A DNA stretch of 64,000 bases from Macrostomum lignano. Its lineage: Eukaryota. The DNA is taken from assembly GCA_002269645.1 (NCBI GenBank), contig NIVC01001689.1, positions 1 through 64,000 of the forward strand, read 5' to 3'. The notes beneath the pieces are model-generated. The model made no database searches. It had not been told where the DNA came from and saw nothing but the letters and a program-made list of their open reading frames with translations. Made by a program: the position numbers and the translations under genes. Positions 3,356 through 53,199 of this stretch are shown piece after piece (the first letter of the stretch is position 1; each line of letters opens with the position of its first letter).

Positions 3356-4028
3356 GGGGAGTATCGCAGGTGGGAGGGGTGGCCGTGGGGAGAGCTCAGA
3401 AGATATAATAAGGAAAAGAGAGGTGCAGATTGAAGCAGGTTAGGAGCAGAGAAAAATACTCACGGAAGAAGAAGTGTCTGAAAAGCATATTCGAGTCGGG
3501 AAAAGCTGATGGACACTCAGTGACGGATAAAGAAGCTTAAAAGCCACAAAAGCATTTTGTTAGAGTCTTTAAAAAGGCAGACAGAAAGTCGCTGTTGGCG
3601 GGGCAGCAGAGGACCGCGGTATTAGGGAAAACGGAAGACTTAACCATTAGGCGGGGAGCGGGCAGTCCCATCCGCATCTGCTCTGCCCCGCGCAGAGCAA
3701 ACTTTTCATGCATAATAAATGCCGTAATTATATAAAAGTATGATTTAGCCTACCATAAGCATATTGCAACTCATACTAATGTATTTAATAAAACTCCTGC
3801 GCAGAAACATAACTCTGGCTGGATGGCATAAGGTAGGCGAAACAGGGAGATGAAAACTTACTCACTTCCTAATAGGGATAATTATACCCTGTCCTGATTG
3901 GCGAGCGCAACGATACGATTAATTAAGATTATGTCAATCAATTCTAAGGTGCCCCAGGCTTCTATTCTGTTAATCTGTAGTTCACCTCGTCCTTTAGGTC
4001 ATTAGAACTTGATACTATGAATTGGAAG

Positions 4029-4975
4029 GTCATGACCCTGTCTTTAGGGCAGTCATGACCTGTGTTTAGGGCAGTCATGACCCTGTGTTTAGGGCAGTCA
4101 TGACCTGTGTTTAGGGCAGTCATGACCCTGTGTTTAGGGCAGTCATGACCCTGTGTTTAGGGCAGTCATGACCCTGTGTTTAGGGCAGTCATGACCATGC
4201 GTTTAGGGCAGTCATGACCCTGTGTTTAGGGCAGTCATGACCCTGTGTTTAGGGCAGTCATGACCCTGTGTTTAGGGCAGTCATGACCCTGTGTTTAGGG
4301 CAGTCATGACCTGTGTTTAGGGCAGTCATGACCATGCGTTTAGGGCAGTCATGACCCTGTGTTTAGGGCAGTCATGACCTGTGTTTAGGGCAGTCATGAC
4401 CCTGTGTTTAGGGCAGTCATGACCCTGTGTTTAGGGCAGTCATGACCCTGTGTTTAGGGCAGTCATGACCTGTGTTTAGGGCAGTCATGACCATGCGTTT
4501 AGGGCAGTCATGACCCTGTGTTTAGGGCAGTCATGACCCTGTGTTTAGGGCAGTCATGACCCTGTGTTTAGGGCAGTCATGACCCTGTGTTTAGGGCAGA
4601 CATGACCCTGTGCTTAGGGCAGTCATGACTCTGTGTTTAGGGCAGTAATGACCTGTGTTTAGGGCAGTCATGACCCTGTGTTTAGGGCAGACATGACCCT
4701 GTGTTTAGGGCAGTCATGACCCTGTGTTTAGGGCAGTCATGACCCTGTGTTTAGGGCAGTCATGACTCTGTGTTTAGGGCAGTAATGACCTGTGTTTAGG
4801 GCAGTCATGACCCTGTGTTTAGGGCAGACATGACCCTGTGCTTAGGGCAGTCATGACTCTGTGTTTAGGGCAGTAATGACCTGTGTTTAGGGCAGTCATG
4901 ACCCTGTGTTTAGGGCAGACATGACCCTGTGTTTAGGGCAGTCATGACCTTGTGTTTATGGCAGTCATGACTCTG
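4029..4975. repeat. 23-bp minisatellite (GTCATGACCCTGTGTTTAGGGCA)
   Basis: About 40 units; palindromic GTCATGAC core. Confidence 0.95.
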
Positions 4976-5002
4976 TACAGCAGTCATAACCCTGTTTCGG
5001 GA

Positions 5003-6927: not shown

Positions 6928-9900
6928 TCAATCTTGACCTGCAGCAGCCCCTAAAAGCTCCGCAGTCCGCTGCTTGACCCCCAGCGCTCCGAGCCGCTGG
7001 CCGGGTTCCGGGTGCCACAGCGCTTCCAGCAGGCCGTCGGCGAGGACGCGGCAGACGGGACCGCCGGCCAGCCAGGCGTCAGCAGGCAGGGCGGGCCTGG
7101 CGCACCGCGGCCGGCACACCAGCTGGCGCATGTCATCCAGGCTGGGATTGGCTGGCGCCCACTCGGCGTAGGGCAGACTGTAGGGCCCGAGGCAGCGCTG
7201 GCCGACCTCCCACAGCACCAAGCCGAGGGCGTACAAGTCGGCCTGCTGGAGGTTCGCGAAGCTGCCGAGCGCCGGACCGCCGTCAAGGAGCTCCGGGCTC
7301 AGGTAGCGGACAGTGCCAACTCGCCTGCGGTTTCGCACAAAATCAAAGGATTAAAAACCCTTCCCGCAACTTCATGGGAAAGATATACAATTGAACTCAA
7401 TGGGATTAAAATCCCACAACGTAACTCAATGGGGATTCAACTCCCACAATGTAACTCAATGGGAATTAAAATCCCACAATGAAACTCAATGGGGATTCAA
7501 CTCCCACAATGTAACTCAATGGGGATTAAAATCCCACAATGAAACTCAATGGGGATTCAACTCCCACAATGTAACTCAATGGGAATAAAATCCCACAATG
7601 AAACTCATGGGAAAAAAATCCCACAATGTAACTCAGTGGGGATTAAAATCCCCCAATATAACTCAATGGGGATTAAAATCCCACAATGTAATTCATGGGA
7701 ATAAAATCCCACAATGTAACTCAATGGGGATTCAACTCCCACAATGTAACTCAATGGGAATAAAATCCCACAATGAAACTCAATGAGGAATAATATCCCA
7801 CAATGTAACTCAATGGGGATTCAACTCCCACAATGTAACTCAATGGGAATAAAATCCCACAATGAAACTCAATGAGGAATAATATCCCACAATGTAACTC
7901 AATGGGGATTCAACTCCCACAATGTAACTCAATGGGAATAAAATCCCACAATGAAACTCAATGAGGAATAATATCCCACAATGTAACTCAATGGGGATTC
8001 AACTCCCACAATGTAACTCAATGGGAATAAAATCCCACAATGAAACTCAATGTGGATTAAACTTTCACAATGTGACTCATGGGGATTAAACCCCGACAAT
8101 GTAACTCAAAGTGTATTATTAAACTTCCACAATGTGACTCATGGGGATTAAAATCCTAAAATGTAACTCAATGGGGATGAAAATCCCACAATCCAACATG
8201 ACAAAATAATGGGGATTAAGGCCAAAAATCAGTTCAATGAGAATTAAAATTGAAGAGGCAGACAGAGACAGACCTGTCCCCATCCCGCCGCAGCTCGTCA
8301 GTCTCCCTGACGGCCAGTCCGAAGTCCGCCAGGCAGCAGGTGAGGTCGGCCTTCACCAGAATATTATTCGATTTCACGTCGCAGTGCGCGATGCCGGGCT
8401 TAACGAAACCGGCCGAGATGAGCTCGGTGTGCAGGTGGGCCAGGCCGGTCACAATGCTGTGGCACATGCCGGCTGCCACCCGACAGCTGATGCTGTGCTC
8501 CATCAGGTAGGTCTGGCCAATGAGAATGGGGCAGAGTGAATCTCAGCTCTGAGATTATCGCTGACACAGATAATCTTACACCTGTACCGATAGAGTCTGA
8601 GACTATCACTGACACAGATAATCTCACACCTGTACCGATAGAGTCTGAGACTATCATTGACACAGATAATCTTACACCTGTACCCATAGAGTCTGAGATT
8701 ATCACTGACACGGATAATCTCACACCTGTACCGATAGAGTCTGAGATTGTCACTGACACAGATAATCTCACACCTGTACCGATAGAGTCTGAGATTATCA
8801 CTGACACGGATAATCTCCCACCTGTACCCATAGAGTCTGATATTATCACTGACACGGATAATCTCACACCTGTACCGATAGAGTCTGAGATTATCACTGA
8901 CACGGATAATCTCACACCTGTACCGATAGAGTATGAGATTATCACTGACACGGATAATCTCACACCTGTACCCATAGAGTATGAGATTATCACTTACACA
9001 GATAATCTCACACCTGTACCGATAGAGTATGAGACGATCACTGACACAGATAATCTCACACCTGTACCGATAGAGTCTGAGACTATCACTGACACAGATA
9101 ATCTTACACCTGTACCCATAGAGTCTGGGATTATCACTGACACAGATAATCTCACACCTGTACCGATAGAGTCTGAGATTGTCACTGACACAGATAATCT
9201 TACACCTGTACCCATAGAGTCTGAGACTATCACTGACACAGATAATCTTACACCTGTACCCATAGAGTCTGGGATTATCACTGACACAGAGATAATCTCA
9301 CACCTGTACCCATAGAGAATGAGATTATCACTGACACGGATAATCTCACACCTGTACCGATAGTCTGGGATTATCACTGACACGGATAATCTTACACCTG
9401 TACCCATAGAGTATGAGATTATCACTGACACAGATAACCTCACACCTGCACCGACACTATAAGGATATCAAATGACGGAGAATAGCTATGGCTATAAAGG
9501 GCGACCATCCTCAACCCCCAACGCAGCCGCAGACCTGCAGGGACCCGTTGGCATGGTAATCGGTGATCAACCACAGCTGAGTTTCCCAGCCGGCGTCCAC
9601 GTTGTCAATAGCGATGAAGCCCAGGATGCTGGGGTGCGCCAGGCCAGGCGTGGCGTAGATCTCGCCTTCCCGAGACCAGGAGGCCTCCACCCGGCTGTGA
9701 AAAATCTTCACCGCCACCGTGTCGCTGACCTCTCCGGTGCGCCACGTGCCCTGCGATGACAGACGGGAGCAATGGGATTTTGATAGACTTATGTCTGTCT
9801 GTTTTAATGTCTGTCTGTTTTAATGTCTGTCTGTCTGTTTTAATGTCTGTCTGTTTTAATGTCTGTCTGTTTTAATGTCTGTCTGTCTGTTTTAATGTCT

Positions 9901-10379
9901 GTCTGTTTTAATGTCTGTCTGTTTTAATGTCTGTCTGTCTGTTTTAATGTCTGTCCGTCTGTTTTAATGTCTGTTAGTCTGTTTTAATGTCTGTCCGTCT
10001 GTCTGTCCGTCTGTTTTAATGTCTGTCCGTCTGTTTTAATGTCTGTTAGTCTGTTTTAATGTCTGTCCGTCTGTCTGTCCGTCTGTTTTAATGTCTGTCT
10101 GTCTGTTTTAATGTCTGTCTGTTTTAATGTCTGTCTGTCTGTTTTAATGTCTGTCCGTCTGTTTTAATGTCTGTCTGTCTGTCTGTACGTATGTTTTAGT
10201 GTCTGTCTGTCTGTCTGTCCGTATGTTTTAGTGTCTGTCTGTCTGTCTGTTCGTCTGTTTTAGTGTCTGTCTGTATGTATGTCTGTCTGTCTGTATGTCT
10301 GTTTTAATGTCTGTCTGTCTGTTTTAGTGTCTGTCTGTCTTAATGTCTTAGTGTTTGTACGTCTGGCAGTCTGACTATC

Positions 10380-10430
<51 letters not shown>

Positions 10431-10433
10431 TAA

Positions 10434-10472
<39 letters not shown>

Positions 10473-13400
10473 TTGTCCGTCTGTCTCTCTTAGTGTCTGT
10501 ACATCTGTCTGTCTGTCCGGCTGTCTTAGTGACGTTAGTGTATGTCTTACGAGCGTAGAGCCTGGGCTCCAGGCCTCCATCTCTCACCCTGAAAACCTGG
10601 CCAAACCGGCCCTGCCCGACCGGGCAATCCACCGTGGTGTCCCTGGCGATGGTCCGCCTAACCAGGTGCGGATTTCCGTAGCCGCTGCTGGAACAGCCCT
10701 GCTGCTGCTGCTGCCGCCAAACCGACGCCAGCTCATGCTGATGAAGCTGACCCTCGGCCCCAGCCTCCTGCTCCTGGTGCAGCCGCTGCATCAGCACATT
10801 TTGATCTCGCACGCTGTCGGCATCGGCGGCGCCACCCCGCCGGCCTCGGAAGAGCCGCAGCCGGGCCAGCAGGCGGTTCAACTTGTCGCGCCTCGGCAGG
10901 CCGCCGCAGCACCAGCAGGCGAGGACCAGGCCGGCGGCGGCAGTGGCCAGGGCCGCTAGTCCTACGAAGCCGGCGACAGCGCTGGCGAACGCCGAGGCCG
11001 CCGTCCAGCCGCCTGGCTGCCTGGGCGGGCCGAAGCGCAGCTGGCTTAAATTGGAGAGCCGCACCACCTGCTGCTGAGCATCGATCAGCGGCATCGCCTC
11101 GGCCAGGTTGCAGAGACTGCCGTTTTTGCAACAATTTCTGCCCGGCGACAGGTGGCAAAATGAGCCAGCTAGCAGAGACACCGTGGCGTCGGACTCGGCA
11201 GATGGGGAGTCAGCAATTAACTGGCGGCGAGTCAGGCACCTGGGTGTTTTGGGGAGATTAGAGGCATGGGGAGCAGTCTGTCAGCTGGGTGTTTTGGGGA
11301 GATTAGAGGCATGGGGAGCTGTCTGTCAGCTGGGTATTTTGGGGAGATTAGATACATGGGGAGCAGTCTGTCAGCTGGGTGTTTTGGGGAGATTAGAGGC
11401 ATGGGGAAGTCTGTCCATGCTTGGGGCTCAGTAGTCAGGACTCAGCAGAAGGGGCATAACTGCCTGCTCAATGGCTGCAAGTCCTACCTACTTCAAGTAC
11501 TAGCTCAAGTAGGATGGGAAACTACATTTCTTGAAAACATTTAGGAAGCAGGTTTTACCAAAAATACATTACAGAGATAGGGGGTTATAATTTTTTTAGT
11601 ACTCAGGGTTTATCTTTTAATATGTCTTATCTTTTATATAGCTCTATTGATATGCATAAGTTTTTATTTATTTAAGATTCTTTGCTTGTTTTAAATCAGA
11701 CATCTGATTCAGTAAATCATCATATTATTTTAAGTAGCAAAGAATAAAAAACATAGGATTAATTGTCCTGGTTTTTTAAGTACTCCATGATAAAATCCCT
11801 ATTGAAAAGAGTTGCTAAATGATAGACAGCTATCCAGCACATCTAAAAAATGACTGCAGTGCAATACAATGTGACATTTGGTGCTGCGCTTGGAATCCAT
11901 GTCAAAACAGTCAAGCACAGAATGGCCTAAATGTCATAAGTTAGCAAAGTTATTTGGAATGCTTTATGTAACAATGCTGCTTATATGTGCCACCACTGCT
12001 AAAGCAATGCAAAGTGCCAAAAAGTTGCTTTATTGTCACAATGCCTCTTAGGCCCAGGTGTGCACTTGGTGACCCCTTGATATAGCCTATGTACTTTGGA
12101 GAGTGGCCCTTTAGTACATTTTTGCTAGACCCTCTATATGCATCCATGCATTCTTAGATTTTATTTTTAGTACATAGAACTAAAATAGGGAATGAAAGGA
12201 TCATAATCATTTCAATAACTTGACATTTCAGTGACAGTTATTTTGGTGACAAGCAAGTCATTTCAGTGACAAGAAAAATACCCATTGGTGATAGCCATTT
12301 TGTTTTTAAACAGTAAATTACCTTGCAAATCTTAAGGGATATCAAGCCTTAACTTTTTAATAATTTTCTGCAATGGTTGACCATTACTTTATTTAATTTT
12401 GTTTATTTACAATTCTAGAATTGCAATCTTTTGAATTGATATGTTTTCCAATCTAATTCCAATTGTGTCTAGTGAATATATATATCTACTATTCTTGTAG
12501 TTAGGCCCTAGCATTTCATGAAGATTCTCTATAGGTTTATGGTTTTTGTGTCTAAATATTCTGGGACAATTCAAAATGATCTGCACAGAAAGAAAAGCAT
12601 ATAATTAGTTTGATTTCTTTTCCTACATATACTAATCTTTTGATAGAAATTTTCAAATATAAACAAAACATGAATCTTAACAAAATAACTACAAGCTGAT
12701 ATTATTAAGCACTTTCTGTCACTAAAATGACTATAATTATAAATTCTTTATTTTTTAACAAAAACAAAGTTTGTTTATAACAAAAGCAACTTGTCACCAT
12801 AATGACTATTTATCACCAAAAAGTCTGTTACCAAAATGACTTGTCACCAAAATGACCAAAACCTAAATGAAATGACTTACTAGATAAATAAACAAAGTCC
12901 TTAAGGAAGAAGTAATATTAATTTTTACAAGTATATTAGTTTTGCAATAGTTCATACTATTATATTAAAATTTTAAATGTATAAGAAAGTTATTACTATA
13001 AAATTATTAGAAATTATAATTGTAAATATTCAAATATTTGTATATTCACTCAAAATAGACATATGTATAGAAAGAAAGAATAACAAAATTCGAAAAGACC
13101 TCATTGGTTTATGCCGGTTTCCATGCATTTCGGTGCCCGTGCTTTTCGGTGCCCGGCATTTCGGTGCCCCAGATTGCTTTTCGGTGCCTCAATTTATGAC
13201 GCCAAAATGATGATAATAAAAAAGAAATCCAATAAACGTTCAAAATGTTCGATATTCCTAATAAAAGCAGTGTTCATTTTGTTAAGCTGGCACGCTTCTT
13301 AAATTTAGAAAAATCCGGTCAATTTAATTGCATGCATTTGCTGTACAGTACGTAATCATGTAATATACAATACAATCTGGCGGCACTCAGCAAGCGTGCC

Positions 13401-14622
13401 AGTGCTATGAAGACTTAGTTAGGTAAAGTTGAAATCTATTAATGATGCTACATGTAGTTTTGATCGAAATTATAAAATGTGACAAGTCTACATGTATTTT
13501 AGTTAGTATTGATTTTTTGTATCACACGCAACCGACGATCATGTTTTGTTTCATAAAACTGCCTAGGAAATGAAGTGTGTATTATTTGATGAGCTAAAAT
13601 GATTGGACCATAATCTATAAGATTTTATTATAAGCGCATTTGGGGCATTAGTTTAAAATTTTGATGTGGATGAGACATAGTAGCAAGCGACATGAAGTTT
13701 AATCAATCATTGAGTAATTTCGAAAACCATTTTTTTGAATTAAAACACCAGGTCAGCTTAACAAAATGAATAATACCTTGTTTTTAAAGGTAAGTAAGTA
13801 AGTACTGCAAAGACAAAGCACTCACTGCTAAATTAAAAGGGCTCAATTTCTATATTCTTGTGTCCAATTCCAATGTATAATATGGGCACCAAAAAGCAAG
13901 CTGGGGCACCGAAAAGCGTGGATACTGTTTATGCCAATATATTTATTGCCAAAGTTGGGGTGGGTTCACAGTATTTCACAGTAGGGCTAAAATAAAAAAT
14001 AGTTAATAAAAGGCAAAAGAACTTACCCAAATGATACATAATTTAATGTTAGTATATTTTTGTTCCATACTTTGCAAAAATTTGAAGTTTGTTTATCATC
14101 ATGTAAGTTATTACATTTTGTGTACTGATAAAGCTGCTGATTGCAAATTGTATTTATAGCCAAGCTATTGCCATTGGCATTATAATTTAATAGGCCTATC
14201 CTTTTAACATTCATACTTTTACATATATCATTTGTAGACATATAGCATTTTGAATATTCTAAAGGCAAATTTATAGTACAGCATAGTGGTCTATTAATAA
14301 GGTGATGAAACTGCTGTTTCACATCTTCAAAACATGACTCATTTCTTTTCAAGTAAGATCCATTTTCAATCATTACACAAGAATATAACTGGTGAAACAT
14401 AATTGAAACATGCACATTACTATTCCATGCTTTGATCATATCGGATGAAATTAGATTTTGTTGACAATATGAATAGTCATTCTTAGGTTCAAAAGATTCC
14501 ATTGAAACCGGAAAATCCATAATATGAGGCGTATAAACACAACTTGATGAAGTTTGACACAAACATTCTTCACACACAAAGTACAGAATGCTAGTTATGA
14601 GAATAATTTTCGTTGAATACAT
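6928..14622 (-). CDS. TGF-beta/activin superfamily type I receptor Ser/Thr kinase (ALK4/5/7-Baboon-like L45 loop), 5 exons, 699 aa
   Basis: Exons 14622-14027, 11239-10588, 9750-9535, 8512-8274 and 7324-6928. All introns are GT-AG and phase-compatible (2100 nt total). Signal peptide, Cys-box [11 protein letters not shown] helix, GS-like [62 protein letters not shown]. Exons 2-5 are secure; joining exon 1 rests on splice phase and Cys spacing. Confidence 0.9.
7395..8225. repeat. 30-bp minisatellite (60-bp dimer) filling receptor intron 4
   Basis: TTAAAATCCCACAATGTAACTCAATGGGGA units. Confidence 0.95.
8545..9450. repeat. 48-bp minisatellite filling receptor intron 3
   Basis: GAGATTATCACTGACACAGATAATCTCACACCTGTACCGATAGAGTCT units. 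Confidence 0.95.
9790..10545. repeat. (GTCT)n microsatellite with GTTTTAAT interruptions filling receptor intron 2
   Basis: Direct periodicity. Confidence 0.95.
11240..11410. repeat. 45-bp tandem repeat x4 at the 3' end of receptor intron 1
   Basis: Units start at 11240, 11285, 11330 and 11375. Confidence 0.9.
12220..12865. mobile_element. Old foldback/MITE-like element with TTTTGGTGACAAG subterminal repeats
   Basis: TTTTGGTGACAAG...GTCATTT motifs near 12240-12270 are inverted relative to AAAATGACTTGTCACCAAAA near 12830-12855; no TSD resolved. Confidence 0.45.
13112..13920. mobile_element. Foldback/MITE-like element with TTTCGGTGCC subterminal repeats
   Basis: TTTCGGTGCC repeated at 13125-13190; inverted GGGGCACCGAAAAG at about 13902-13916. 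Confidence 0.5.
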
Positions 14623-15799
14623 AGGTACTAATTATATTATATTATAAATTAAACACATAAATAATAGGATAGGATATAAATGGATATCGGAATGATGTAA
14701 AGCCTCAACCACTCGCTGCACCTGCCTATGTGTTCCCTTTAGAAAGTGTTATTCTAAGAAACAAAGCAAGTTAAAATGTTAAAAATAAAACAAAATACTT
14801 TTATATAAGAAGTTCTAAAAAGTTCTTAATTCTAAGGATATTTATTTACTTACAGAAAAATTATCTTTTAAATTGATTTATGAGTATAATTCATTTTTAA
14901 TTTAGCTTTTTATGGCAATATTTTCATTTTTAACTCAATAATTTATTGGAAATGTTTTAAACAGTGCTCACTGCTCACTCTATTGAATTAGAAACAGCGA
15001 ATTTAGTAAAAAAACACGATATCGTGCCTTTATAACGTGCTTACTTCAAAATGCTTCTGTTATTGAATTTTGATTTTACACAATAATATTTTATTTTCCT
15101 AGCTGTAGGCTCACTAGAGGCTGTAGCGTGTAGTTCAAGATCATGGCATCATGCAAAAAAGTATTTTTTCTGTTCTGTGGTGACCAGGATGGAATTCTTG
15201 TATTTCTTAAGTCAAACGGAATTATGCAATTTTTTTATGGCACGCAAAATATTTTTATTGGTCGCATTTTTTATTTTGGTACTTAGCACGTCGCAAAATG
15301 GTAAGAACAAGTTTTTTAATGGCTTAGCTAAAATTCTAAAAAGTAATCAATAAGACAATAATGAAAAATTCATTCTAAGAAAATGTAGTGATTTGAATTT
15401 TTGTCCAAATACATATGTTAGAGAATGTTACGAGTTTCTACTTTTTATAGAATTTTTTCGAATTTTTACTTTTGTGCCTTATTTAGTTTTTACTTTTTAT
15501 TTTTTTTTCCTTTGTGATCTTAGCTAGTAGGATTATCTTTTGCAAAATCCAATATCTCAAGCGCACTTTTGCATATATTAAGAATAAGCAATTTTGTCTG
15601 AAATTCTGCGACACATTTTTTTCCGGATTTTTTGATGCAAAATCGTATTTTTTCGCGCAATTGCATAACGCGTTGTGATTTTTCTGCAAGAATTACATCC
15701 AGGTGTGGTGAGGAGATAAATATTGTGGCAATCAATGCCGCGTTGGCCTATATGTCTTGTCTAATCTTGTTAAATGGTCTTGTGACGTTGTCAGTTTAA

Positions 15800-15821
15800 G
15801 GTGGTCCCGAAAAGGGCCGTT
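15800..15821 (-). other. Second, more degenerate histone-type stem-loop (AAC GGCCCT TTTC GGGACC ACC) on the minus strand of the solo LTR
   Basis: Reverse complement of 15800-15821; same flanks as the + copy; one stem mismatch and one wobble pair. Confidence 0.55.
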
Positions 15822-16534
15822 GGACTGCTGTTCTCCATAGTCATTCAACCCTTCAGTTTCATCGTTTCAACTAAACTTTTCCATTCGTTTATTGCGACGT
15901 TTACTTGTAGTAGTGCCCAACGATTTTGTGGCAATTTCTAATTCACTGTATATTTTGCTATCCTCTCTCGCGACCGTATAAAATTGGCACGATCGATAAT
16001 TTTAAGTTCTCTCGCCAGCCAATGAAATCACTCGTGCTCGCGCTACCCCCCTCTGCGCTCTTTTATTAAACCCCCCCCGCCTGGTGGCGGCACTCCTCAC
16101 TTGTTCCTTGTTTCCTTCCCTGCTGCCTCTTAGCTGTCTTATCTGTTCGTCTGGCTGCCTCGAGCCTCCTTATTTCTCACCGTGGCCCTTCTGTCTGGGC
16201 CAGCCTGCTCACACACTTACTTGACTGTCTCACGCCACGACCGACGCCAAACTCGCCACTACGTTTCACTGCCTTCACTGTGCTCATAGCCACTGCTCAC
16301 GTCACGTCGCCATTGTGTCATTCGCCTGCCACTTGACTTCATATCCAAATTATATTCAACCCATTGTTGCAGCCGCCAGTGCCCAGAAAGCTATAGTCTG
16401 TTTATTGCCAGTAACAACCAAACTTAATACTGATATTAACAATAAAGACAACTACGGCAGTTCCTGCCTTTATCGCCAAGTGCTCCGCTACAAAATCCGC
16501 TTTACAAGAATTGACTTCAACTTATTTTGGGACT

Positions 16535-16558
16535 AAAACGGCCCTTTTAAGGGTCACC
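16535..16558 (+). other. Histone-mRNA-type 3' stem-loop motif (AAAAC GGCCCT TTTA AGGGTC ACC) inside the solo LTR
   Basis: Matches the metazoan consensus GGYYYU-UUUH-ARRRCC-ACC with one G-U pair. Confidence 0.65.
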
Positions 16559-17559
16559 GCATAGCTGGCCGCTACGCCAATAACGTGACAGTCTATAACT
16601 TGCCGTTTTTGTGCAATGGCAGGCCAACCTAGCCAATCTAACTAGTATAAATTCAGTGTTGGGCACAAATTCACAATTCCAATACTCCCATAGGCTTCCA
16701 GACAATCCGACCACAATCAAATCAGCGACGGACAATCTGGCGACAGATCTTGTATTGTCTTGATTTTACAGATTTTAGATACAAACAAAACTTTACAGGA
16801 ATGGTAGTTTTTAATTTTACATGTAGTAGTAGTAGTAGTAAGTTTGGCTCAGGCAAGAAGCCTATATGGCCAATATTTCAATGTATTTAATTGTAATTCA
16901 AGAGTAGAAAGAAATATTTATGCATAAGTACAAGTTTTGCAATAATATAGTATTTGAAAGAGCACCCAAATTTTTTCTACGAAACTTCAAACAATCTTTA
17001 ACAACTAATAAAGCAAAATTTTTTTAAGTAAAGAATTAAAAAACAAGCATTGTATGAACTTGATGTATAGCAATTTGATTGATCCCATAGGTGATATATA
17101 TAAATAAGTTGGCGTCACTAGGAGAGCGAATAGATGCTAGCAGGAAAATAGGATTTCAATACTAATCTCTAGCTTAAGCCAAAAAAAGTTTTACAATGTT
17201 AAAACGAAATGCATATAGATATTGATCAGACAATAACAAAAATCAAATGTAAGGATTATTGGCAATTATTAGGCATTGAAGATAAAAGATATTTTTTAAA
17301 GCAAATATAAGAGAAAATGATAAAAATAGAGCACTTTAAACAAGTTTTAGGTAGGCATTAAATGTTTGCAATTAGAAAATTTATGGTACAAATGAACACA
17401 TAATGGAGAAATTTCACTGGTATTTTTTAAACAAAGAGAAGCAGGAACTTAATTGCAAGGAGGTATATTTTATATTGTATCTCTTATCTTGTATCATTTT
17501 TATCATACATAGTTTTGGGTATTTAAAATAGGTCCTTCAAGATGAAGCAGTGATAGAAA

Positions 17560-18080
17560 TTTATGGTATGAAATCTGCAAAAAGATTTTCAAGTCAATCA
17601 ATATCAGATAGGAAACTATAAATCTTTTGAATTGCATTGAGGTCTTTTTTGATTTGGTGATTTTGTTTTTGTTGTTGTTATAGCCAATTTTGTAAAAGTG
17701 TTTTGGTTTTAGGCTCTCTAGACCAAAGTATTTTTTTCTAATCTCAATCAAATTGGAACACTCAGCAACAAAGTGTAGTATGTCATTTCCAGCTTTTTTA
17801 CCACACAACCTATATGATTCCTATACAAAAATTCTAGGTAAGAATTCATACTTTAACTTTAACATGGTTGTTAGAAACTTTTTGATTCTAAAGACACTGG
17901 GGAAGTAAGTTTGCAACTTGGGTCTGCAAGTCCTTTTATATTTAAGGGTATGCTTGAAATATTTTGAACAACTTTGATCCTTTAATTTCATCCCTAGCTC
18001 TTTTTCCCAATTTAGTTTTAGCTCTCTTTTTAGGATTGATTTATCTTTACTAAAACTTTGGCTAGGCCTAGGGTTCACTA
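17560..18080 (-). pseudogene. Decayed non-LTR retrotransposon ORF2 3' end
   Basis: Broken frame ...RLCGKKAGNDILHFVAECSNLIEIRKKY resembles the C-terminal CxxC...H...C motif of L2/CR1-group LINEs; an in-frame stop lies upstream. Confidence 0.5.
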
Positions 18081-19684
18081 AGGTAATGTATTCTAGGTTT
18101 ATACTTTGTAGCTTTTTTATGACTTTTGCTCATGTAGAGAATACATATAGAGAATTCACTTTAAGATGACAAATATCTTTTCTAATAAAAATTGTACATT
18201 ATGTCTATACTTCTGACAGTTTAGGATGTCATATCAAATGCATTTTAATGTAATAATGTATTTGCATATGATAAAACTAGTGTGTAGCCTTTAGTGAAAA
18301 TATAAAAGAATGCATTGATTTGATGCAGTTTCCCATTTTTAAAGCAATATGTATTATCATTATAAGAAAACAAGCTGTTGATAGTTGATCAAAATCCATG
18401 CATTTTGAACCCACTAAATTTCAATTCTCAGAACTATTTTTGCATATTCTAATAAAAAATAGTTAATAATAATAATAGCAAATATAATTATAACAATCAA
18501 AGCTCTTTTAATCTGTTTAAATAACAGTATCTATTTTACATATAATAGCTTTTTACTACAAATTGTTGCTAGATTGACTGGCACCATTTTGACTGTCGCT
18601 AGATTGTTTAATGCTGGATTGTCTTGTTGCTGGATACTGGATTGATTGGATACCTTCCTATATTACTAGCAATACCTTTTTTGGGTATCAGAATATCAGA
18701 AGACTATACTTTTTATAGTATTAGACTTTGGTAACTTTCAATACAACTTGTAAATTTTCCCAATAGTCCGATACTTTGAGCATGCAAACAATCAAAATTT
18801 CTTTGAAACAAATGAAATAAGGGCATATTTTTCATGTAAAGAAATGAATAATGATAAGTACTTCATTTTTTTGTCAATTACATTGACCAAAATAACAATA
18901 TTAGGGTAAAATAACAATTTTTTTACTTAAAACAAGTTTTTTTCTTTTTAAAATAGCCTCCACCATATATTCAAGTACCTGTTTATTGGTTAGTAATTAG
19001 TAATTATTGTTAAAATTATAATATTCAATTATTTATTTATCAATAATAAATGTACTAAATGTATCAACAATAACAATTATCATGCCCAATGCCACAAATT
19101 CTACCACATTTTCATTGTTAGTCACTGATTGGCAATTGATTTTATAATCTATAATGGTAGATATACTAGTATTACACTATAATAACATAAGAAATTAAGA
19201 GAACAATGTATAAGCAGTTAGCAATAAATAAGTAAATCTATTATTTTTGGTATATACATTGTACATATATTGGGCAAGGCCAAGTTAAGTAAAGGGAGGA
19301 GAAAGTGATGTAATTTGCATGTAAGTTTATATGTAAATGCATAGAGAATGGCAAAGCCAAGTATTGTTCAATCAGAGGTAAGGCTTTAAAGTTTGTACCT
19401 GGGCTTAGAGCAGTTGGTCTGGCTGGCTAACTAAGTACACAATAAGTACACAATAAGTCCAACCAAAGGCTGAGAGGTTGAGTATGCAAGTGTAGCAATC
19501 ATTTGACATCTGTTTGTTTTTGATTTGTTGATTTGATTTTATTTGTTTTATTGATGGTTTCTTCATTTAAAACAATGCTAAGCTTGCTTTCTTTCTTTGC
19601 CTAGAAATTTAGGAGAAGGTCTAAGAAGCTTAAATTATGCATTATATTTATTAGACATTGCTTTTTGCAAAAACTGGGTATTGG

Positions 19685-19978
19685 AATAATAATAATAATT
19701 GATTACACCTGCCCAATGGGCAGATGTGCAACCGACAGCTCAGCCACAGCTATTGCGCGGCGCATCTGAAGGCTGCGTACGGCTGTTTAGTCCAAGGACT
19801 GGGGGGTCGCCACACACACCCTCAATTACCCCAGCTAATGCTGGTACCCATTTTACAGCTGGGTAAACTGAAGCAACGCAGAGTTAAATGTCTTGCTCAA
19901 GGACACAAATTGTTGCAGAGGGATCGGGAATCGAACCCCCAACCGTCGTGAGTCCGACGCCCTAACCACTAGGCTACA
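19685..19978 (-). mobile_element. tRNA-derived CORE-type SINE
   Basis: Minus strand: A box TAGCCTAGTGG, B box GGTTCGATTCC, central GTGTCCTTGAGCAAGACATTTAAC...CTGTAAAATGGGTACC resembling the CORE domain, and an (ATT)n tail. Confidence 0.8.
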
Positions 19979-21378
19979 ACCCCTTGGAATATACTGTATT
20001 GGAATAAAGTATCATTATTAAGGTATCAACAATACTCAAATTTGGGTATTGGACTTTAAGGTATTGGTGATACTTTTTATAGAAAAGGTATTGGGGTATG
20101 GTTTTCATCAATACTTTTTTGAGTATCATGCCCAACACTGTATATATTGTGGTAAAGTCAATGTAAGTTTGCAAAATTGATGGCTATTTTGTTTTTTTTT
20201 TTTTTTTTTGACAAAATTTAGCAATAATTAAATAGATATTGTTTTTGTTTTTTTTGGGTAAGTCATAGCTAGTATAATTTCAATAGTTGTACATATATTT
20301 GTATATTCATTATATATTTCATTTTTGTTTTAAACAAATTAGGAATTTGAAGCCATTATTAGAGTTAGGCTCTAGATAATATACATGTACACCAGAATTT
20401 TCCAGCATACAAAGGGATCTGCTATACACTATTGGCATACAAATTGGCATATAGAGGGGCCTAGCATACCCCTTGGTGTACAGATTGGCATACAAAGATT
20501 TGCCAAGATAGCAAGAGAACCAAAGTTCCAAGTCCCAATCAATATACAGTACTTAGTCAGCATACAAAAATGATTAAGTTCAACTTTGGTATAGTCTCTA
20601 TATACAGCTATATTTTAATCAAAAAGAGTAGCTCCCAGACCTTACAAAATAAATTTTAATTATTAAAATTTTGTGATCCTTAAGTATTGGTTGTAATTTT
20701 TAATTTTTGTTTTGGTATGTTTTTGTTTGAAATTAAAGTCTGTTGGTATTTGAGCCAGGGAAGCAATTTTTATTCTAGCATATACCAGTACATGATCCTG
20801 ACCCTGGCATTAGAAGACTTTGTTTTTATTCTTTTTTATTTACAATCTTTTCTCATTGACTTGCACTTAGTAAAATTTATTATTAAATGAATCTATTAAC
20901 AATCCATAGCTAAGAATAGGCCTCTAATATCTGACTGTTTTTCATTCCCTTATTCTTAAGCAGAGACTACCCATAGGGGCAATTATAGATATATTAGGCA
21001 TAGAGAAAATTATTTCCATTGATTCTGTTAACTAATTTGATTAACCCAAAATTAAATACAATCCAAAATAAACCAACTTGAATTTGGATTTCAAATTGTG
21101 TTATAGACCTCATTTTAAATGTTCCTTCAAGATACTAAGTCATGATATAATATAAAATGGTTTCTAAAAATAAAAGTTGTTAGATAAAAATTTTGCTATG
21201 CCTTTGGTTTACATTTTTCTTGGTCATTGGTCATTACAATATTCAATCATGTGTTTCGAGGTTGAAGAAGGCCCTATGTATTTGTAAAAAAATGAACATC
21301 TATTAAAGCTATGCTATTTGTAAGCCTTCAAACATGAATCACACTTTTATTGAATGCTTATAACATTTCAGAGCAGCC

Positions 21379-23918
21379 ATGACACAAGGCAGCTACACAC
21401 TGGCAGGTGCTGTAGATAGCAGTGACAAACAGCAGGAGGAACTGCTTGAGATCGATCTAATTCGACATCCTGGAAAGCCACTGGGCATTGAGTTCCTGTT
21501 TGGCCATCTGAGCCTACCGCGTGGTCCCACCAGCGGCCTCTTTGTACGACGGGTTGACAAGCAGACCGCTGGAAGTGACAGCGGAGATGCCAGCTTGCTT
21601 GAGGAGGGCGACTTTGTCCTGTCCGCTAATGGCCAGGTAAGTAAAATTTGTCTGCATTGCCTCGTTTGTAGGCTGCACACTCAGCATGCCTACCTAAAAT
21701 TAGGGAATTAGGGAGGGCAGCACACAGCCACCTGAAGAATTAGGGAGGGCAGCTCAGCCACCTGAAGAATCAGGGAGGGCAGCTCAGCCACCTGAAGAAT
21801 CAGGGAGGGCAGCTCAGCCACCTGAAGAATCAGGGAGGGCAGCTCAGCCACCTGAAGAATTAGGGAGGGCAGCTCAGCCACCTGAAGAATCAGGGAGGGC
21901 AGCTCAGCCACCTGAAGACTCAGGGAGGGCAGCACACAGCCACCTGAAGAATCAGGGAGGGCAGCACACAGCCACCTGAAGAATCAGGGAGGGCAGCACA
22001 GCCACCTGAACAATCAGGGAGGGGAGCACACAGCCACCTGAAGAATCAGGGAGGGCAGCACAGCCACCTGAACAATCAGGGAGGGCAGCACACAGCCACC
22101 TGAACAATCAGGGAGGGCAGCACACAGCCACCTGAAGAATCAGGGAGAGCAGCACAGCCACCTGAACAATCAGGGAGGGCAGCACAGCCACCTGAACAAT
22201 CAGGGAGGGCAGCACACAGTCACCTGAAGACTGCAAGTTCACAGCCGAATTCCCCGGGCAGGAGCTCCGCACAGCCGCGACAGAGGCGGCCGCACTGGAG
22301 GCGATCCGCAAGGCCGGTCGGCAGTGCCGGCTTCGAGTCCTGCGCAGCGACTTTGTCCGCTCCGAGTTTCTCAACTGCCTCGTCCGCTCTCTCAACGGCG
22401 GCGGCGTCATCGGCGGGTCTCGCCGCGGACCTTCAGCAGTTAATGACGACGTCGCGGTGCATCAGCGGCGTCCGCAGCAGCAACGACAGCGCCGAGCAGC
22501 TGCTGAATCAGCTTCGCCGACTCGATCCCCCCACCAGGCGCCGCCGCCGCCGACTCAGCAGCAGCCGCAGTCGATGCCAGCCCTGTCATCGGGTGCCAGA
22601 GTTCCGCTGGCGAAGCTGGAGCTGGCGCTGGCCCGGTTGGGCTACCGGTTCACCGCTGGCGAGCTGGCCGAGCTCAGGAATTCCGTTGGCGGCGGCGGCA
22701 GCGGCAGCGTGCCGTTCGGTCAGTTCGTGGTCGCCGTCAGCGACATCATCGGCAGGCGGCGGGGTGCTGGCAACCAGCTCGAAATTGAGGAGGCTGTGGT
22801 TGTTCGTAAGTCGCTGCGAGACTTTGCCACTTCTTGATATTCTGATATTTTTAAATGTGATTACCATCCTGTCACTCAATCACCATCTGATGCCCCTAAT
22901 TATCACGTAAAATCTTAGAAAATCATCTAACACCATTGATAATCATCTGACACCATTGATAATCATCTGACACCATTGATAATCATCTGACACCATTGAT
23001 AATCATCTGACACCATTGATAATCATCTGACACCATTGATAATCATCTGACACCATTGATAATCATCTGACACCATTGATAATCATCTGACACCATTGAT
23101 AATCATCTGACACCATTGATAATCATCTGACACCATTGATAATCATCTGATCATCGTTAGTTACCTTTACTAACGACTGTCCGCCGCCCGCCTCAGCAGC
23201 CGCAGCAGCGGCCACCTCAGCGGCGGCCCCACCTTCGCAGCGGCACCGTCAATCCGGCGGCTTTGAAGCTCGCGACAAACTGGACGCCGTCGACAGCGGC
23301 GCGGCGAAGCAACGGCCGTTTGTCGCTGCTACGTCGACATCGACTGGCTCGCAGACTGCGCTGACAGGCCCGGCCCAGGACGCTGCAGTCGCCGCCGCAA
23401 AGTCTGAGGCCCGCGAACTTGCCGACCAGTGCGCCGCTCTGCAGCGCCGCCTGGACGACGCTGAGGCAGCCAACGAGCGCGACAGGCGACGTCTGGCGGT
23501 GCTGGCTGGCGAGCTGCGGAAATCCGGCCGGCATAGCAACCGGCTAGCAACGGCGCTGCAGGCTACGCTGGACCTGCTGGGCCGCCTGGCAAACCTCGAC
23601 CAGGCCGAGCGGGCCGAGGCCGACGCCGTTGCCGAGCGGGCCGCTGAGTTGCTAAGCAACGAAGGCGTTGATGGCAACGACGACCTGCCGCCAGGTTGGG
23701 AGCCGGCGCAGCTGCGGCCAGGTGGTGCCGAGGCCGCCGCCGCCGTCTTTGCCAACCATGCCGAAGGTCGGGTAGCTCGGCAGCCGCCGGCAGCCGGAAA
23801 TTCCAAACGGGCCGAACAGGAGGCGGAACCGGAAGTCGACGGGCCGAAGCGGCTGCAGCGCTACCGGATGGACATTCTGGACCGCAACGGCGTGCCGGTC
23901 AGGCAGATCGCGCTGTGA
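21379..23918 (+). CDS. STXBP4: Syntaxin-binding protein 4 (Synip)-like: PDZ, EF-hand-like, coiled coil, degenerate WW
   Basis: Exons 21379-21636, 22262-22805 and 23197-23918, phase-compatible, with GTAAGT donors and a TACTAAC branch point at 23168. The PDZ (KPLGIEF...SANGQ-ELRTAA...AIRKAGRQCRLRVLR), EF-like region, coiled coil and LPPGWE...NH...PP follow the known STXBP4 domain order. Confidence 0.75.
21708..22230. repeat. 30-bp minisatellite in STXBP4-like intron 1
   Basis: CAGGGAGGGCAGCTCAGCCACCTGAAGAAT units. Confidence 0.95.
22920..23152. repeat. 20-bp minisatellite in STXBP4-like intron 2
   Basis: AATCATCTGACACCATTGAT, near-perfect units. Confidence 0.95.
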
Positions 23919-24004
23919 CGGCCTGGCGGCTGCTTTGTGACATCTCAGCTGTGCGGTCTGCCGCGGATTGCTTAGATTGTAATTCAGTAATTGCAGGCTT
24001 TCTT

Positions 24005-24155
24005 AACTGTCTGTCTGCCTGTCTGCCTGTCTGTCTGTCTGTCTGCCTGTCTGTCTGCCTGCCTGTCTGTCTGTCTGTCTGCCTGTCTGTCTCTCTGTCT
24101 GTCTGCCTGCCTGTCTCTCTGTCTGTCTGTCTGTCTCTCTGTCTGTCTGCCTGCC

Positions 24156-24188
<33 letters not shown>

Positions 24189-24335
24189 GTCTGTCTGCCT
24201 GTCTGCCTGTCTGTCTGTCTGTCTGCCTGTCTGTCTGCCTGCCTGTCTGTCTGTCTGTCTGCCTGTCTGTCTCTCTGTCTGTCTGCCTGCCTGTCTCTCT
24301 GTCTGTCTGTCTGTCTCTCTGTCTGTCTGCCTGCC

Positions 24336-24400
<65 letters not shown>

Positions 24401-24465
24401 GCCTGCCTGTCTGTCTGTCTGTCTGTCTGCCTGTCTGTCTGCCTGTCTGTCTGCCTGTCTGTATG
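24005..24465. repeat. (CTGT)n compound microsatellite
   Basis: Direct periodicity. Confidence 0.95.
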
Positions 24466-25646
24466 TATTTATGTATGCATGTTTGTATAGCATCGTTTCT
24501 ATTTAAACCATGCTTCATTACAGGTTTCAGTTTTACTCAATTCCGAACACGCAAGCCAAAGTGTAAATGCTTGGCTGTCTCTAGTCTTTTAATCGTTGGA
24601 TTTTGAATTTGTGCCTACAGAATCAAGTTTATAAAGTTTTTCTTATCATTTTTTATTCCAGCGCTTCCCCAAAAACATTCTGTGATTTGTTTTGATGGCA
24701 AAGTCTTACACATCGCCGTGTACTTCGCTTTTTTACTTTTTTGGTGAATGGTATCTCTGTAAGTATTTGAGTTTGGCTGTCTTCCTTTAAAGCGCAGATG
24801 TTTATGCACTGTCCCTCTTTTATTATTTTTTATCCCCAATAAGTTTTGATACTATTTATTTGCTTGTGAAAACTGTCTACCTTCTTGTTAATGCTTAGAT
24901 TTCCAATTAATAAAACTGCAGTTTGAAAACGCGATGCACTGCTGGTCACGTGCTGTGCGACGTCTCCAGCTAATTATTATAATTCTGGGGTTAAATTGTA
25001 CTTGAAATTTGACCAGCTTTGTGAACTGGCGCTGTACTTATCGCTGTTCAATAATCTTGCGCATCAACTCTGCCAGTTGAGCCAGAGAATGTGCAGCAAA
25101 CTTTCCTCCAGCAGCTATTTACACAAGTTTCGGTTATATCGCAGATTTGTTACTGAAAGTAGCGTGCTAAGCAAATGTTTGTTAATATTATACAATATTC
25201 CAAATGAATATCGCATATGCGAGTTTTCGAAACGCAGGCTCCGCTAGGCATGGCGAGTTGGACACGAATTGAACAAACAACACTTTAATGCCCTGTGCTT
25301 TTGCATACATTTGCACAAGTACATAGGTGACAGCACTGACTGTACGCTCGTGTGTTATCCACTCTGTGTGTCTGTCTGTTGTGTGTGTATGTGTGTGTGT
25401 GTGTGTGTGTGTGTCTGTCTGTCTGCATGTCTGGAGAGACTGTCAGGACAGCTCCAAATTCTGTATGTACAGACCAGGGCTGAATAAAGGTCCATTGGAT
25501 ACGGTTATAAATATCTGTGTATCATGCAAAGCTGAACAGCACCAGCGCATTCTCGGCTCTGAAGAACAAGCGATAAAAAAGTTGCGAATGCGCGCACGCA
25601 GAGTCGACGCGCGAAAGCCGCTGGCTGCTTGTTGCCAAGGCATTTT

Positions 25647-27022: not shown

Positions 27023-27184
27023 GGCTGCCCTGGATTTGATTCGCAAAGGTGTTGAACTCCTCCTGGCACTGCAAAGGTGTTGCAGTCAATGAATTACGAT
27101 GAATTAGCCTCTCACAGGGTGGCACTTTTCACATTATCACTGTCATCTGACATAACAAAAATTTCTATCTGACATAAAATCGCT

Positions 27185-28255
27185 ACCATCTGAGACAATA
27201 AAACTGCTACCATCTGACACAATCAAAGCTACCATCTGACACAATCGAAGCTACCATCTGACACAATCAAAGCTACCATCTGACACAATCGAAGCTACCA
27301 TCTGACACAATCAAAGCTACCATCTGACACAATCGAAGCTACCATCTGACACAATCAAAGCTACCATCTGACACAATCGAAGCTACCATCTGACACAATC
27401 AAAGCTACCATCTGACACAATCGAAGCTACCATCTGACACAATCAAAGCTACCATCTGACACAATCGAAGCTACCATCTGACACAATCAAAGCTACCATC
27501 TGACACAATCAAAGCTACCATCTGACACAATCAAAACTACCATCTGACACAATCAAAGCTACCATCTGACACATCAAAGCTACCATCTGACACAATCAAA
27601 ACTACCATCTGACACAATCAAAACTACCATCTGACACAATCAAAGCTACCATCTGACACAATCGAAGCTACCATCTGACACAATCGAAGCTACCATCTGA
27701 CACAATCAAAGCTACTATCTGACACAATCAAAACTACCATCTGACACAATCAAAGCTACCATCTGACACAATCGAAGCTACCATCTGACACAATCGAAGC
27801 TACCATCTGACACAATCAAAGCTACCATCTGACACAATCAAAACTACCATCTGACACAATCAAAGCTACCATCTGACACAATCAAAGCTACCATCTGACA
27901 CAATCGAAGCTACCATCTGACACAATCAAAACTACCATCTGACACAATCGAAGCTACCATCTGACACATCAAAGCTACCATCTGACACAATCAAAACTAC
28001 CATCTGACACAATCAAAACTACCATCTGACACAATCAAAGCTACCATCTGACACAATCAAAGCTACCATCTGACACAATCAAAGCTACCATCTGACACAA
28101 TCGAAGCTACCATCTGACACAATCAAAGCTACCATCTGACACAATCAAAGCTACGATCTGACACAATCAAAGCTACGATCTGACACAATCAAAACTACCA
28201 TCTGACACAATCAAAGCTAACATCTGACACAATCAAAGCTACCATCTGACACAAT
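27185..28255. repeat. 22-bp minisatellite (CTACCATCTGACACAATCAAAG)
   Basis: About 48 near-identical units. Confidence 0.95.
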
Positions 28256-29953: not shown

Positions 29954-30985
29954 CTAGAGAGGTGCCGACAGCACACGGTTGACCATTGGGCGCAGGAGAC
30001 GGAGGCAGCCTCCCGACTGCGGCAGGTAACGTGAAACGGCGCCGCTGCGCCAGCCGCCCAGCCGCTTGATCTGCTCCACGTCGAGGCCGCTGTCGAACGC
30101 CAGACAGGCGCCACCCCGTCGTAGAGAGTGGCCTGAGAAAGCTGTCGCCGCCCAACCTGCATCTGCCAGAGCCCGAGCGAGGCGGCGATCGAATTGACGC
30201 GATGTCATCGGGCACCAGCTTCCGGCGATGTGGACGCAAAACAGCCGAGTGAGCGCCGGCGCAGACCGCAGCTTGTTAGTCTGAAAATGCTGCCGCAGGG
30301 CTTGGACAGGACAAAGTGGGTGGCTTCCGAGTACTGGCAGCACCGCCTCCTGGTAGTCTTGTCCGCATTGGTTGGTCTTCGATTGTCGAACTCGGAGTCT
30401 CCAGCACTGACCATCGGCCTGAGCGTCGCTGACGAGAATGGAGTGGCGCCCGCAGACATTTGCTTTCCTGAGAAGTGCCCAGAAGCAGCAGAGCACGGCG
30501 GCCCAAAAGGCGGCGTCTGCAGGGTCTCTTGGGTTCACCTGGTTTGCCAATGAAAGCAGAACCGCCGGGGTGATGGGGTCTTTCTGCTTGACTGAATGGC
30601 GGCTTGTCCGTTTGGCGCTTTTAACTGCCAGATCGATCAGGCCGGACTTGGTGATGTCGGGGAGTTGCGCCAGCTTGAAGCTCCAGCTGATGGCCGCCAG
30701 GTGACCACCGAGGCTACCGGGTGCCACGCCGCGCTTAGCCAGGCGTCGCACATACTCGACCAGGTGCACCGGGGACGCCGCTAGTGGCTGAACACCTTCG
30801 AGGTTGCAGAAGCGCTGCCACTGTTCGACGTTTGAAGCGTACGATGCCCTCGTACTAGGAGCCCAGGCGTCGGCGAGGAAGCGAAGGAGCGGCCCGGGTA
30901 GGCGGGAGGCAGGAGGCGCCGGACCTGCAAAAGCAAAAGGGAGGCGGAGGCAGGGCAGAGCGCGTGGCGCGAGATGCAGCAGGAT
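29954..30985 (-). CDS. Tyrosine recombinase of the retroelement
   Basis: Frame open from 30985. N-terminal AWAPSTRASYASNVEQWQRFC, LLRKAN (R), SKTNQ (K), HSLRRGG, GGW, SRYL (Y). No in-frame ATG before the catalytic region. Confidence 0.9.
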   Translation of the reverse strand: MLLHLAPRALPCLRLPFAFAGPAPPASRLPGPLLRFLADAWAPSTRASYASNVEQWQRFCNLEGVQPLAASPVHLVEYVRRLAKRGVAPGSLGGHLAAISWSFKLAQLPDITKSGLIDLAVKSAKRTSRHSVKQKDPITPAVLLSLANQVNPRDPADAAFWAAVLCCFWALLRKANVCGRHSILVSDAQADGQCWRLRVRQSKTNQCGQDYQEAVLPVLGSHPLCPVQALRQHFQTNKLRSAPALTRLFCVHIAGSWCPMTSRQFDRRLARALADAGWAATAFSGHSLRRGGACLAFDSGLDVEQIKRLGGWRSGAVSRYLPQSGGCLRLLRPMVNRVLSAPL

Positions 30986-33242: not shown

Positions 33243-33344
33243 GTCGCTACTACAATCAGAGGGAAATTCGTGCCAAAAAAATTTATGATCCTCGCCAGTG
33301 TGACCGCGCGGCGCTCAGTTTATCTGGCCAATATATCTTGCAGC

Positions 33345-48663: not shown

Positions 48664-48789
48664 TGTGCCGGTTCCACTTGGCTGCAGTGGAAATTTGAGC
48701 AGTTTGTCAGCAAGCATGGAAGGCGCTGCAGTAGAGAATAATCTAGCAAAATACTGGCGTATGGTGGGCATAAAAGGGACACAGGAAGA

Positions 48790-52908: not shown

Positions 52909-53018
52909 CAGTGGCACAACTGGGGAGGTCGCTTCACAAGCTCGAAAAGCACTTCCTTTCACAAACCCGAAACTTCATAAGCTCGAAATTTCATATCCTC
53001 AAAACTGTAATTTAAGCT

Positions 53019-53052
<34 letters not shown>

Positions 53053-53120
53053 CTAAGATAGACAAGACAGACAGACAGACACTAAGACACTAAGATAGAC
53101 AGACAGACAGACAGACACTA

Positions 53121-53161
<41 letters not shown>

Positions 53162-53164
53162 CTA

Positions 53165-53199
<35 letters not shown>

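Follow-up and report, generated by a model that had tools for sequence, protein, structure and literature searches.

An 810-bp mobile-element insertion in Macrostomum lignano carries outward-facing hairpins resembling histone mRNA 3′ stem-loops near both ends

We describe an 810-bp segment of the Macrostomum lignano genome that lies in the promoter-proximal region of a receptor serine/threonine kinase gene and carries, close to each end, a 22-nt module that looks like the 3′ stem-loop of a histone mRNA, the two modules facing outward on opposite strands. It occupies positions 15781-16590 of the window, by which we mean the whole 64,000-nt stretch analyzed here (contig NIVC01001689.1, positions 1 to 64,000 of the forward strand, read 5′ to 3′). 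An empty site at a collinear locus of the same species proves that the segment was inserted as a mobile element, that its ends are exact and that the 4 bp repeated on either side are a target-site duplication (TSD). The likeness of the modules to histone mRNA 3′ stem-loops, flanks included, is real and stands far above window-level chance. For what the modules are, we tentatively favor hairpins of genuine histone type that a family of elements kept and that have decayed in the present copy; a structural inverted repeat with a coincidental resemblance is a close competitor.

An insertion with exact ends

A preliminary description of this DNA had marked out an 810-bp TG...CA element with a GTCT TSD, and both its coordinates and its letters proved correct. 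The element reads TGTGACGTT...AACGTGACA at its ends, giving termini of TGTGA and TGTCA (the TGTNR type) next to the 4-bp duplication. Taken alone, such features carry limited weight: TG...CA together with a 4-bp repeat near the hairpins turned up in 21% of shuffles and is weak evidence by itself. The combination of TG...CA, TSD and a terminal inverted repeat matching at 8 of 9 positions was found in only 0.04% of shuffles.

The proof comes from comparison with related loci in GCA_002269645.1, the M. lignano assembly Mlig_3_7 with contig prefix NIVC, namely the genomic loci of PAA93745.1 and of its cluster mate PAA69461.1, to which we refer as L009 and L010. L010 is collinear with window positions 25433-13929 at ~86-92% identity, and across the insertion site the collinearity is exact, with L010 9213-9330 corresponding to window 16709-16593 and L010 9329-9405 to window 15780-15704. 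At this point L010 has a single GCCT and the element is absent: in window orientation it reads ...TTGTTAAATGGCCTATAACTTGCC..., and its window counterpart is ...TTGTTAAATGGTCT, then the 810 bp, then GTCTATAACTTGCC.... This empty site identifies the 810 bp as inserted DNA with exact boundaries and the 4-bp repeat as its target-site duplication. The comparison also shows that the element entered the promoter-proximal region of one copy of the kinase gene after this locus had diverged from its M. lignano counterpart. The other locus offers no empty site, as the upstream sequence of L009 is unrelated beyond ~500 bp from the ATG.

Base composition sets the element apart as well, with a GC content of ~0.48 vs ~0.30 in its flanks. 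We found no second copy of it in the window, L009 or L010; its flanks are unique within the window, and no pair of long terminal repeats (LTRs) is present in the 64 kb. Its longest open reading frame (ORF) is 73 amino acids (aa) long, and an exact look-up of this ORF gave no match; a single-frame translation of the element, with stops written as X, matched no protein.

Another window-specific insertion, an AT-rich (29% GC) miniature inverted-repeat transposable element (MITE) of 520 bp at 15184-15703, is found 77 bp to the left of the element. It is absent from the collinear L010 and has terminal inverted repeats matching at ~15 of 17 positions and an 8-bp TSD, TGTGGTGA, at 15176-15183 and 15704-15711. 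The length of this duplication is hAT-like.

Two modules resembling histone mRNA 3′ ends

The hairpin sequences and positions given in the preliminary description were as claimed (Table 1): the plus-strand hairpin lies 35 nt from the right end of the element and the minus-strand hairpin 22 nt from the left end. Their fit to the Rfam Histone3 family (RF00032) extends, on both strands, over the 5′ flank, the 5′ arm GGCCCU, the U-rich loop and the 3′ ACC. These are the parts that matter for recognition by SLBP, which within the loop means the UUU. The A-rich 5′ and ACC 3′ flanks looked for in an RF00032 hairpin were found in both cases (AAAAC and ACC for the plus-strand hairpin, CCAAC and ACC for the minus-strand one).

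At E<=10, RF00032 has no match in the 64-kb window other than these two hairpins, and 57 kb of related M. lignano sequence contained no match to this family. The reported E-values of 0.46 (plus strand) and 4.1 (minus strand) include a factor of 4227 for the number of families; per family they correspond to ~1e-4 and ~1e-3. Both modules contain the identical 12-mer AACGGCCCTTTT, which spans the flank, the 5′ arm and the UUU and occurs nowhere else in the window (chance expectation 0.26 with one mismatch allowed). Where the modules differ, they do so in the 3′ arm and at loop position 4, a position written in lower case, i.e. weakly conserved, in the Rfam consensus line. The broader pattern of the 12-mer, a gap and AACGTSACA has two matches in the window vs 0.00 expected. 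Searched as AACGGCCCTTTT-N(15-40)-AACGTSACA, it had 0 matches in viral contigs and 7 in metagenome contigs, all of the latter pattern-only: they show no further similarity and are not histone hairpins.

The pairing within the stems is less regular than the flanks. The preliminary description had proposed a 6-bp stem closing a 4-nt loop between histone-type flanks; the loop and the ACC flanks stand, but the clean Watson-Crick stem does not. The plus-strand stem has six pairs, with a G.U at pair 2 (-8.8 kcal/mol, z -1.0 vs shuffles), and in the minus-strand stem pair 3 is a C.A mismatch and pair 6 a U.G (z -0.7 vs shuffles). Neither hairpin, therefore, forms six clean standard pairs around a 4-nt U-rich loop.

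In overall plan, the modules are like the RF00032 stem-loop in having a stem of six positions with the GGCCCU 5′ arm, a 4-nt UUUN loop, and AAC and ACC flanks, and they point outward on both strands. They are unlike it in their sub-threshold scores, their non-canonical pairs and the lack of a visible purine-rich element, and also in their setting, which is the inside of a transposon with no histone ORF upstream. The preliminary description had already noted that no histone ORF lies between the hairpins, in agreement with our finding that none of the six frames gave a Pfam histone match at E<=10.

Ends, interior and class of the element

Inverted similarity common to the two ends is confined to two blocks, the terminal 9-mer (8/9) and the 22-nt hairpin module (18/22), and the spacers between these blocks, 10 and 23 nt long, are unrelated to each other. 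An end-to-end inverted alignment reaches 41 and 54 nt inward, with a score of 33 vs 23.5 +/- 4.6 for shuffles (~2 standard deviations). A long terminal inverted repeat was considered and rejected, as this alignment barely exceeds what shuffles give. The module is retained at each end and the spacers to the termini are not, a pattern that suggests two separately maintained modules rather than one decayed long inverted repeat.

The interior has promoter-like and polyadenylation-like motif matches. The sole TATAAAA of the element (15977-15983) and a CCAAT (16019-16023) both fall inside a pair of 21-nt direct repeats, and the sole plus-strand AATAAA lies further to the right (Table 1); one TATAAAA followed by one plus-strand AATAAA is the order expected for an LTR. 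Plus-strand pyrimidine content inside the element reaches 76%.

Table 1. Features of the element, its hairpin modules and the adjacent kinase gene (window coordinates)
Feature	Positions	Strand	Basis
Left target-site duplication copy, GTCT	15777-15780		Read directly; one site copy in L010
Inserted mobile element, 810 bp	15781-16590	+	Empty site, ends, composition
Left terminal inverted repeat TGTGACGTT, TGTNR-type end	15781-15789	+	8/9 inverted match to 16582-16590
Left 22-nt module AAC-GGCCCT-TTTC-GGGACC-ACC	15800-15821	-	Rfam RF00032, 18.1 bits; stem-loop 15818-15803
Promoter-like segment, two 21-nt direct repeats	15964-15984, 16008-16028	+	Motif matches
Pyrimidine-rich stretch, 56-58% GC	~16050-16330	+	Composition
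AATAAA, sole plus-strand one in element	16441-16446	+	Motif match; 94 nt upstream of plus-strand hairpin
Right 22-nt module AAC-GGCCCT-TTTA-AGGGTC-ACC	16537-16558	+	Rfam RF00032, 20.6 bits; stem-loop 16540-16555
Right terminal inverted repeat AACGTGACA	16582-16590	+	8/9 inverted match to 15781-15789
Right target-site duplication copy, GTCT	16591-16594		Read directly; one site copy in L010
Kinase exons	14622-14027, 11239-10588, 9750-9535, 8512-8274, 7324-6931	-	Spliced 699-aa product

The segment had been called a solo LTR. What is proven of that claim is a mobile insertion with TG...CA ends and a TSD. We consider it probable that the element is the solo LTR of an integrase-type LTR retrotransposon, with its sense direction on the plus strand because TATAAAA is followed by AATAAA on that strand. 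In that case the repeated TATA/CCAAT segment would belong to U3, the R region after it would be long and rich in pyrimidines, and U5 would be short. Two of the marks looked for in an LTR are found here: TG...CA with short terminal inverted repeats, and a TSD in the 4-6 bp range at a site that is otherwise intact. In M. lignano, 137 families of LTR retrotransposons have been curated, and some of their LTRs acquired host heat-shock elements, which provides a precedent in this species for the adoption of a host regulatory motif by an LTR (PMC12801592). With its TGTNR ends, short TSD, promoter-like and poly(A)-signal motifs in a single orientation and position near a host gene, the element is like the Ty3/Mdg4-type solo LTRs of M. 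lignano (PMC12801592). It is unlike the known LTR families of this animal in that none has been reported with histone-type hairpins, and a subterminal 22-nt inverted pair is unusual for an LTR.

TGTNR ends with a 4-bp duplication fit LTR retrotransposons and Ginger-type DNA transposons equally well. The element could thus be a non-autonomous DNA transposon with inverted ends, mobilized by an integrase-related (Ginger-like) transposase, in which case the symmetry of the hairpins would simply be the symmetry of terminal inverted repeats; we think this unlikely, although several observations speak for it. Ginger1 and Ginger2, from marine invertebrates, combine the same type of termini and a 4-bp TSD with inverted ends and an aquatic-invertebrate host (PMC2836005), the inverted similarity of our element reaches deeper (41 and 54 nt) than is usual for LTR ends, and neither a partner LTR nor an internal region was found in the window, L009 or L010. 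However, in Ginger elements the inverted repeats run without a break for 40-270 bp, and insertion is into CCGG/CCGT (Ginger1) or RTATAY (Ginger2) (PMC2836005). In our element the inverted similarity is limited to two short blocks whose spacers are unrelated, the target G[T/C]CT fits neither preference, and no transposase relative was found. The strong asymmetry of the interior (TATAAAA, AATAAA, up to 76% plus-strand pyrimidine) also argues against an inverted-end transposon, as does the contrast with the MITE 77 bp away, whose terminal inverted repeats are truly contiguous.

What the hairpins may be

The reading that we favor, while giving it less than even weight, is that the element family maintains true hairpins of histone type near both ends, in the form of the two 22-nt modules, and that these have decayed in the present copy. 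Such hairpins would act on RNA, as SLBP-type 3′-end or stability signals for transcripts leaving the element in either direction: the predicted end lies ~30 nt inside the right edge for a sense transcript and ~18 nt inside the left edge for antisense or read-in transcripts. Because the insertion postdates the 8-14% divergence of the two loci, a few substitutions are expected in the 44 nt of the two modules. Both hairpins of this old, solitary copy have non-canonical pairs and are probably inert, and no effect on the receptor gene would be implied.

A number of observations weigh against this reading. Both RF00032 scores (20.6 bits on the plus strand and 18.1 bits on the minus strand) fall below the gathering score of 34, the canonical fold of the minus-strand hairpin is not predicted in its sequence context, and neither hairpin is more stable than shuffled sequence. 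U7-dependent processing of histone 3′ ends leads one to expect a purine-rich downstream element; no run of the AAAGAG or GAAAGA type is seen in the stretch from either hairpin to the corresponding end of the element, although the host U7 sequence may differ. An Rfam scan of the 64-kb window gave no U7 gene. The two outward-facing hairpins are, moreover, inverted partners of each other (18/22), i.e. the arms of one inverted repeat, and they count as one observation rather than as independent evidence. If the element is an LTR, a hairpin in R/U5 would have a counterpart in the 5′ LTR, ~550 nt from the start site, and this counterpart would compete with full-length transcription. Finally, our literature search turned up no transposon reported to use histone stem-loops.

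The preliminary description had gone on to propose that the element family uses the SLBP/U7 machinery, and this part did not gain support: sub-threshold scores, non-canonical pairs, the lack of unusual stability and the lack of a visible purine-rich element all run counter to it. Co-option of SLBP and U7 is neither supported nor excluded by the present copy, in which the sequence resemblance is real and the functional marks are missing. We would call it rather unlikely that, in a family of flatworm retrotransposons, both sense and antisense transcripts finish in a histone-type stem-loop rather than a poly(A) tail and that the RNAs of the family are bound by SLBP and coupled to S phase.

To our knowledge, the histone stem-loop hardly ever works as a signal outside histone genes. 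Were this so, the element would be the first known case of mobile DNA drawing on the histone mRNA 3′-end system. S-phase coupling would mean coupling to dividing stem cells (neoblasts) in these animals, and the element would have a novel means of matching its RNA in time to stem-cell division, or of terminating outgoing transcripts. In planarians, SLBP is required for stem cells (PMC4603911), and the canonical histone mRNAs, which are stem-loop-terminated and non-polyadenylated, are singled out by a PIWI protein (PMC10954484). RNAs of the element might by the same token enter the PIWI pathway, or be shielded from it, and they would be a natural test of how histone RNAs are told from others by SLBP, U7 and the PIWI-interacting RNA pathway. 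The nearest known link between an LTR and the histone 3′-end machinery is in human HERV1/LTR12, whose copies carry motifs like the histone downstream element that are complementary to U7 snRNA and repress LTR transcription (PMC11417402). There, too, CCAAT boxes are found in the LTR. The element differs from LTR12 in having a hairpin that resembles the SLBP-binding one and no visible U7-complementary element, and the LTR12 motif represses and does not form 3′ ends.

Nearly as likely as genuine hairpins is a coincidental resemblance, in which the modules form a structural inverted repeat and neither SLBP nor U7 is involved. We consider two variants: the 22-mers would be subterminal sites for an integrase, a transposase or a host DNA-binding dimer, or they would be a complementary U5-U3 pair that joins the two ends of the genomic RNA. 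In favor of this explanation, the modules are inverted copies of each other, and on the plus-strand RNA they are computed to pair mutually at -34 kcal/mol vs -13.4 +/- 3.1 kcal/mol for shuffles. GC-clamped hairpins are common near transposon ends, and the genomic RNAs of some retroelements have complementary 5′ and 3′ sequences, for example the pairing of CYC5 with CYC3 in Ty1. The element is like Ty1 in having a U5-side and a U3-side sequence on one RNA that are predicted to be able to pair, but CYC5 and CYC3 are short and do not resemble histone hairpins. The sub-threshold Rfam scores, the imperfect stems and the lack of a visible downstream element speak for this explanation as well, and a 20-bit match at ~1e-4 per 64 kb would arise by chance roughly once or twice per gigabase, often enough for a broad scan to come across some. 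Such a chance match, however, must also fall within the terminal module of a transposon, and neither a DNA site nor RNA-RNA pairing has any need of an A-rich 5′ flank, a UUU loop and an ACC 3′ flank. The differences between the two arms are also either at the tolerated loop position 4 or of a kind that breaks pairing, and the mutual pairing has been kept no better than the hairpins. If the likeness is a coincidence, we are dealing with an ordinary solo LTR or small transposon near a kinase gene, valuable as a dated insertion marker between duplicated Macrostomum loci.

The modules might also be fragments from the 3′ ends of host histone genes that were captured passively and are carried along without a role, a possibility that we rate as quite improbable. 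Transposons do carry host fragments (e.g. PMC6839031), and capture would account for a sequence that is near-canonical with its flanks included, but it would have to have placed a fragment at both ends in mirror orientation, and no other histone-derived sequence, whether coding or from a 3′ untranslated region, lies beside either hairpin.

A decayed divergent pair of histone genes, the alternative that the preliminary description had held out as a refutation of its own proposal, has next to no chance of being correct, and the same is true of a chance arrangement with no mobile element at all: outward-facing stem-loops with TATA and CCAAT between them do have the geometry of a divergent pair, but the 721 bp between the stem-loops are too short for two genes, and the gene pair is excluded by the lack of any histone-fold remnant in six frames together with the status of the segment as an insertion, which is flanked by a target duplication and missing base for base from the collinear locus, while the chance arrangement is excluded by the shuffles, the pattern statistics and the empty site in L010.

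The kinase gene and other features of the window

The preliminary description had placed a receptor ATG about 1.2 kb from the element, in good agreement with our finding of the ATG at 14622 on the minus strand, 1159 bp from position 15781, in a gene for a receptor serine/threonine kinase. In an exhaustive search of representative proteins, the 199-aa ORF that begins with this ATG (14023-14622, minus strand) was 93% identical to the 696-aa M. lignano protein PAA93745.1, which bears the UniRef name "receptor protein serine/threonine kinase" and has PAA69461.1 as a cluster mate. The gene is uninterrupted, and its five exons encode a 699-aa product that is 96.7% identical to PAA69461.1; this exact product was not among the proteins of the searched collection, and exact look-ups of ORFs of the window gave no record either. 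Three diverged copies of the kinase locus are known, those in the window, L009 and L010. Strand-skewed, GC-rich minisatellites fill the introns of the gene in the window and show collinearity with the M. lignano paralogues.

On the other side of the element, the stretch 16709-20053 does not align with L010 and contains a SINE-like (short interspersed nuclear element) repeat at ~19690-19983 on the minus strand, with a tRNA-like head at 19983-19919 (Rfam tRNA, 29.7 bits) and a body that ends in an (ATT)n tail. Collinearity with L010 at ~92% covers 20248-25433, which corresponds to L010 385-6951 and includes a PDZ-like exon ORF at 21379-21711 (plus strand); in L010 this region has an annotated 509-aa gene on the strand opposite to that of the kinase gene.

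A P-element/THAP9-like DNA transposon at 41808-45871 has inverted ends of 310 bp with 99% identity to each other (41808-42117 and 45562-45871) and an uninterrupted 735-aa ORF (42625-44832) with the Pfam TNP-like RNaseH_N and GTP-binding insertion domains, and arrays of a 22-bp minisatellite border it on both sides. A 636-aa ORF at 30781-32691 (minus strand) contains the reverse-transcriptase domain RVT_1 and appears DIRS-like from a reading of its motifs; its best relatives are 45% identical, and the named ones come from coral and amphioxus.

Very dense minisatellites occupy many places in the window (for example 550-1300, 4000-5000, 7300-11200, 27050-28000, 33300-34400 and 37050-38050, and again 48700-50000, 53000-53600 and 57100-61800), with periods of 8-12, 20, 22-23, 28, 30, 48 and 69 bp, a high GC content and a strong GC skew. 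They alternate with unique sequence of 30% GC and give rise to many long spurious ORFs.

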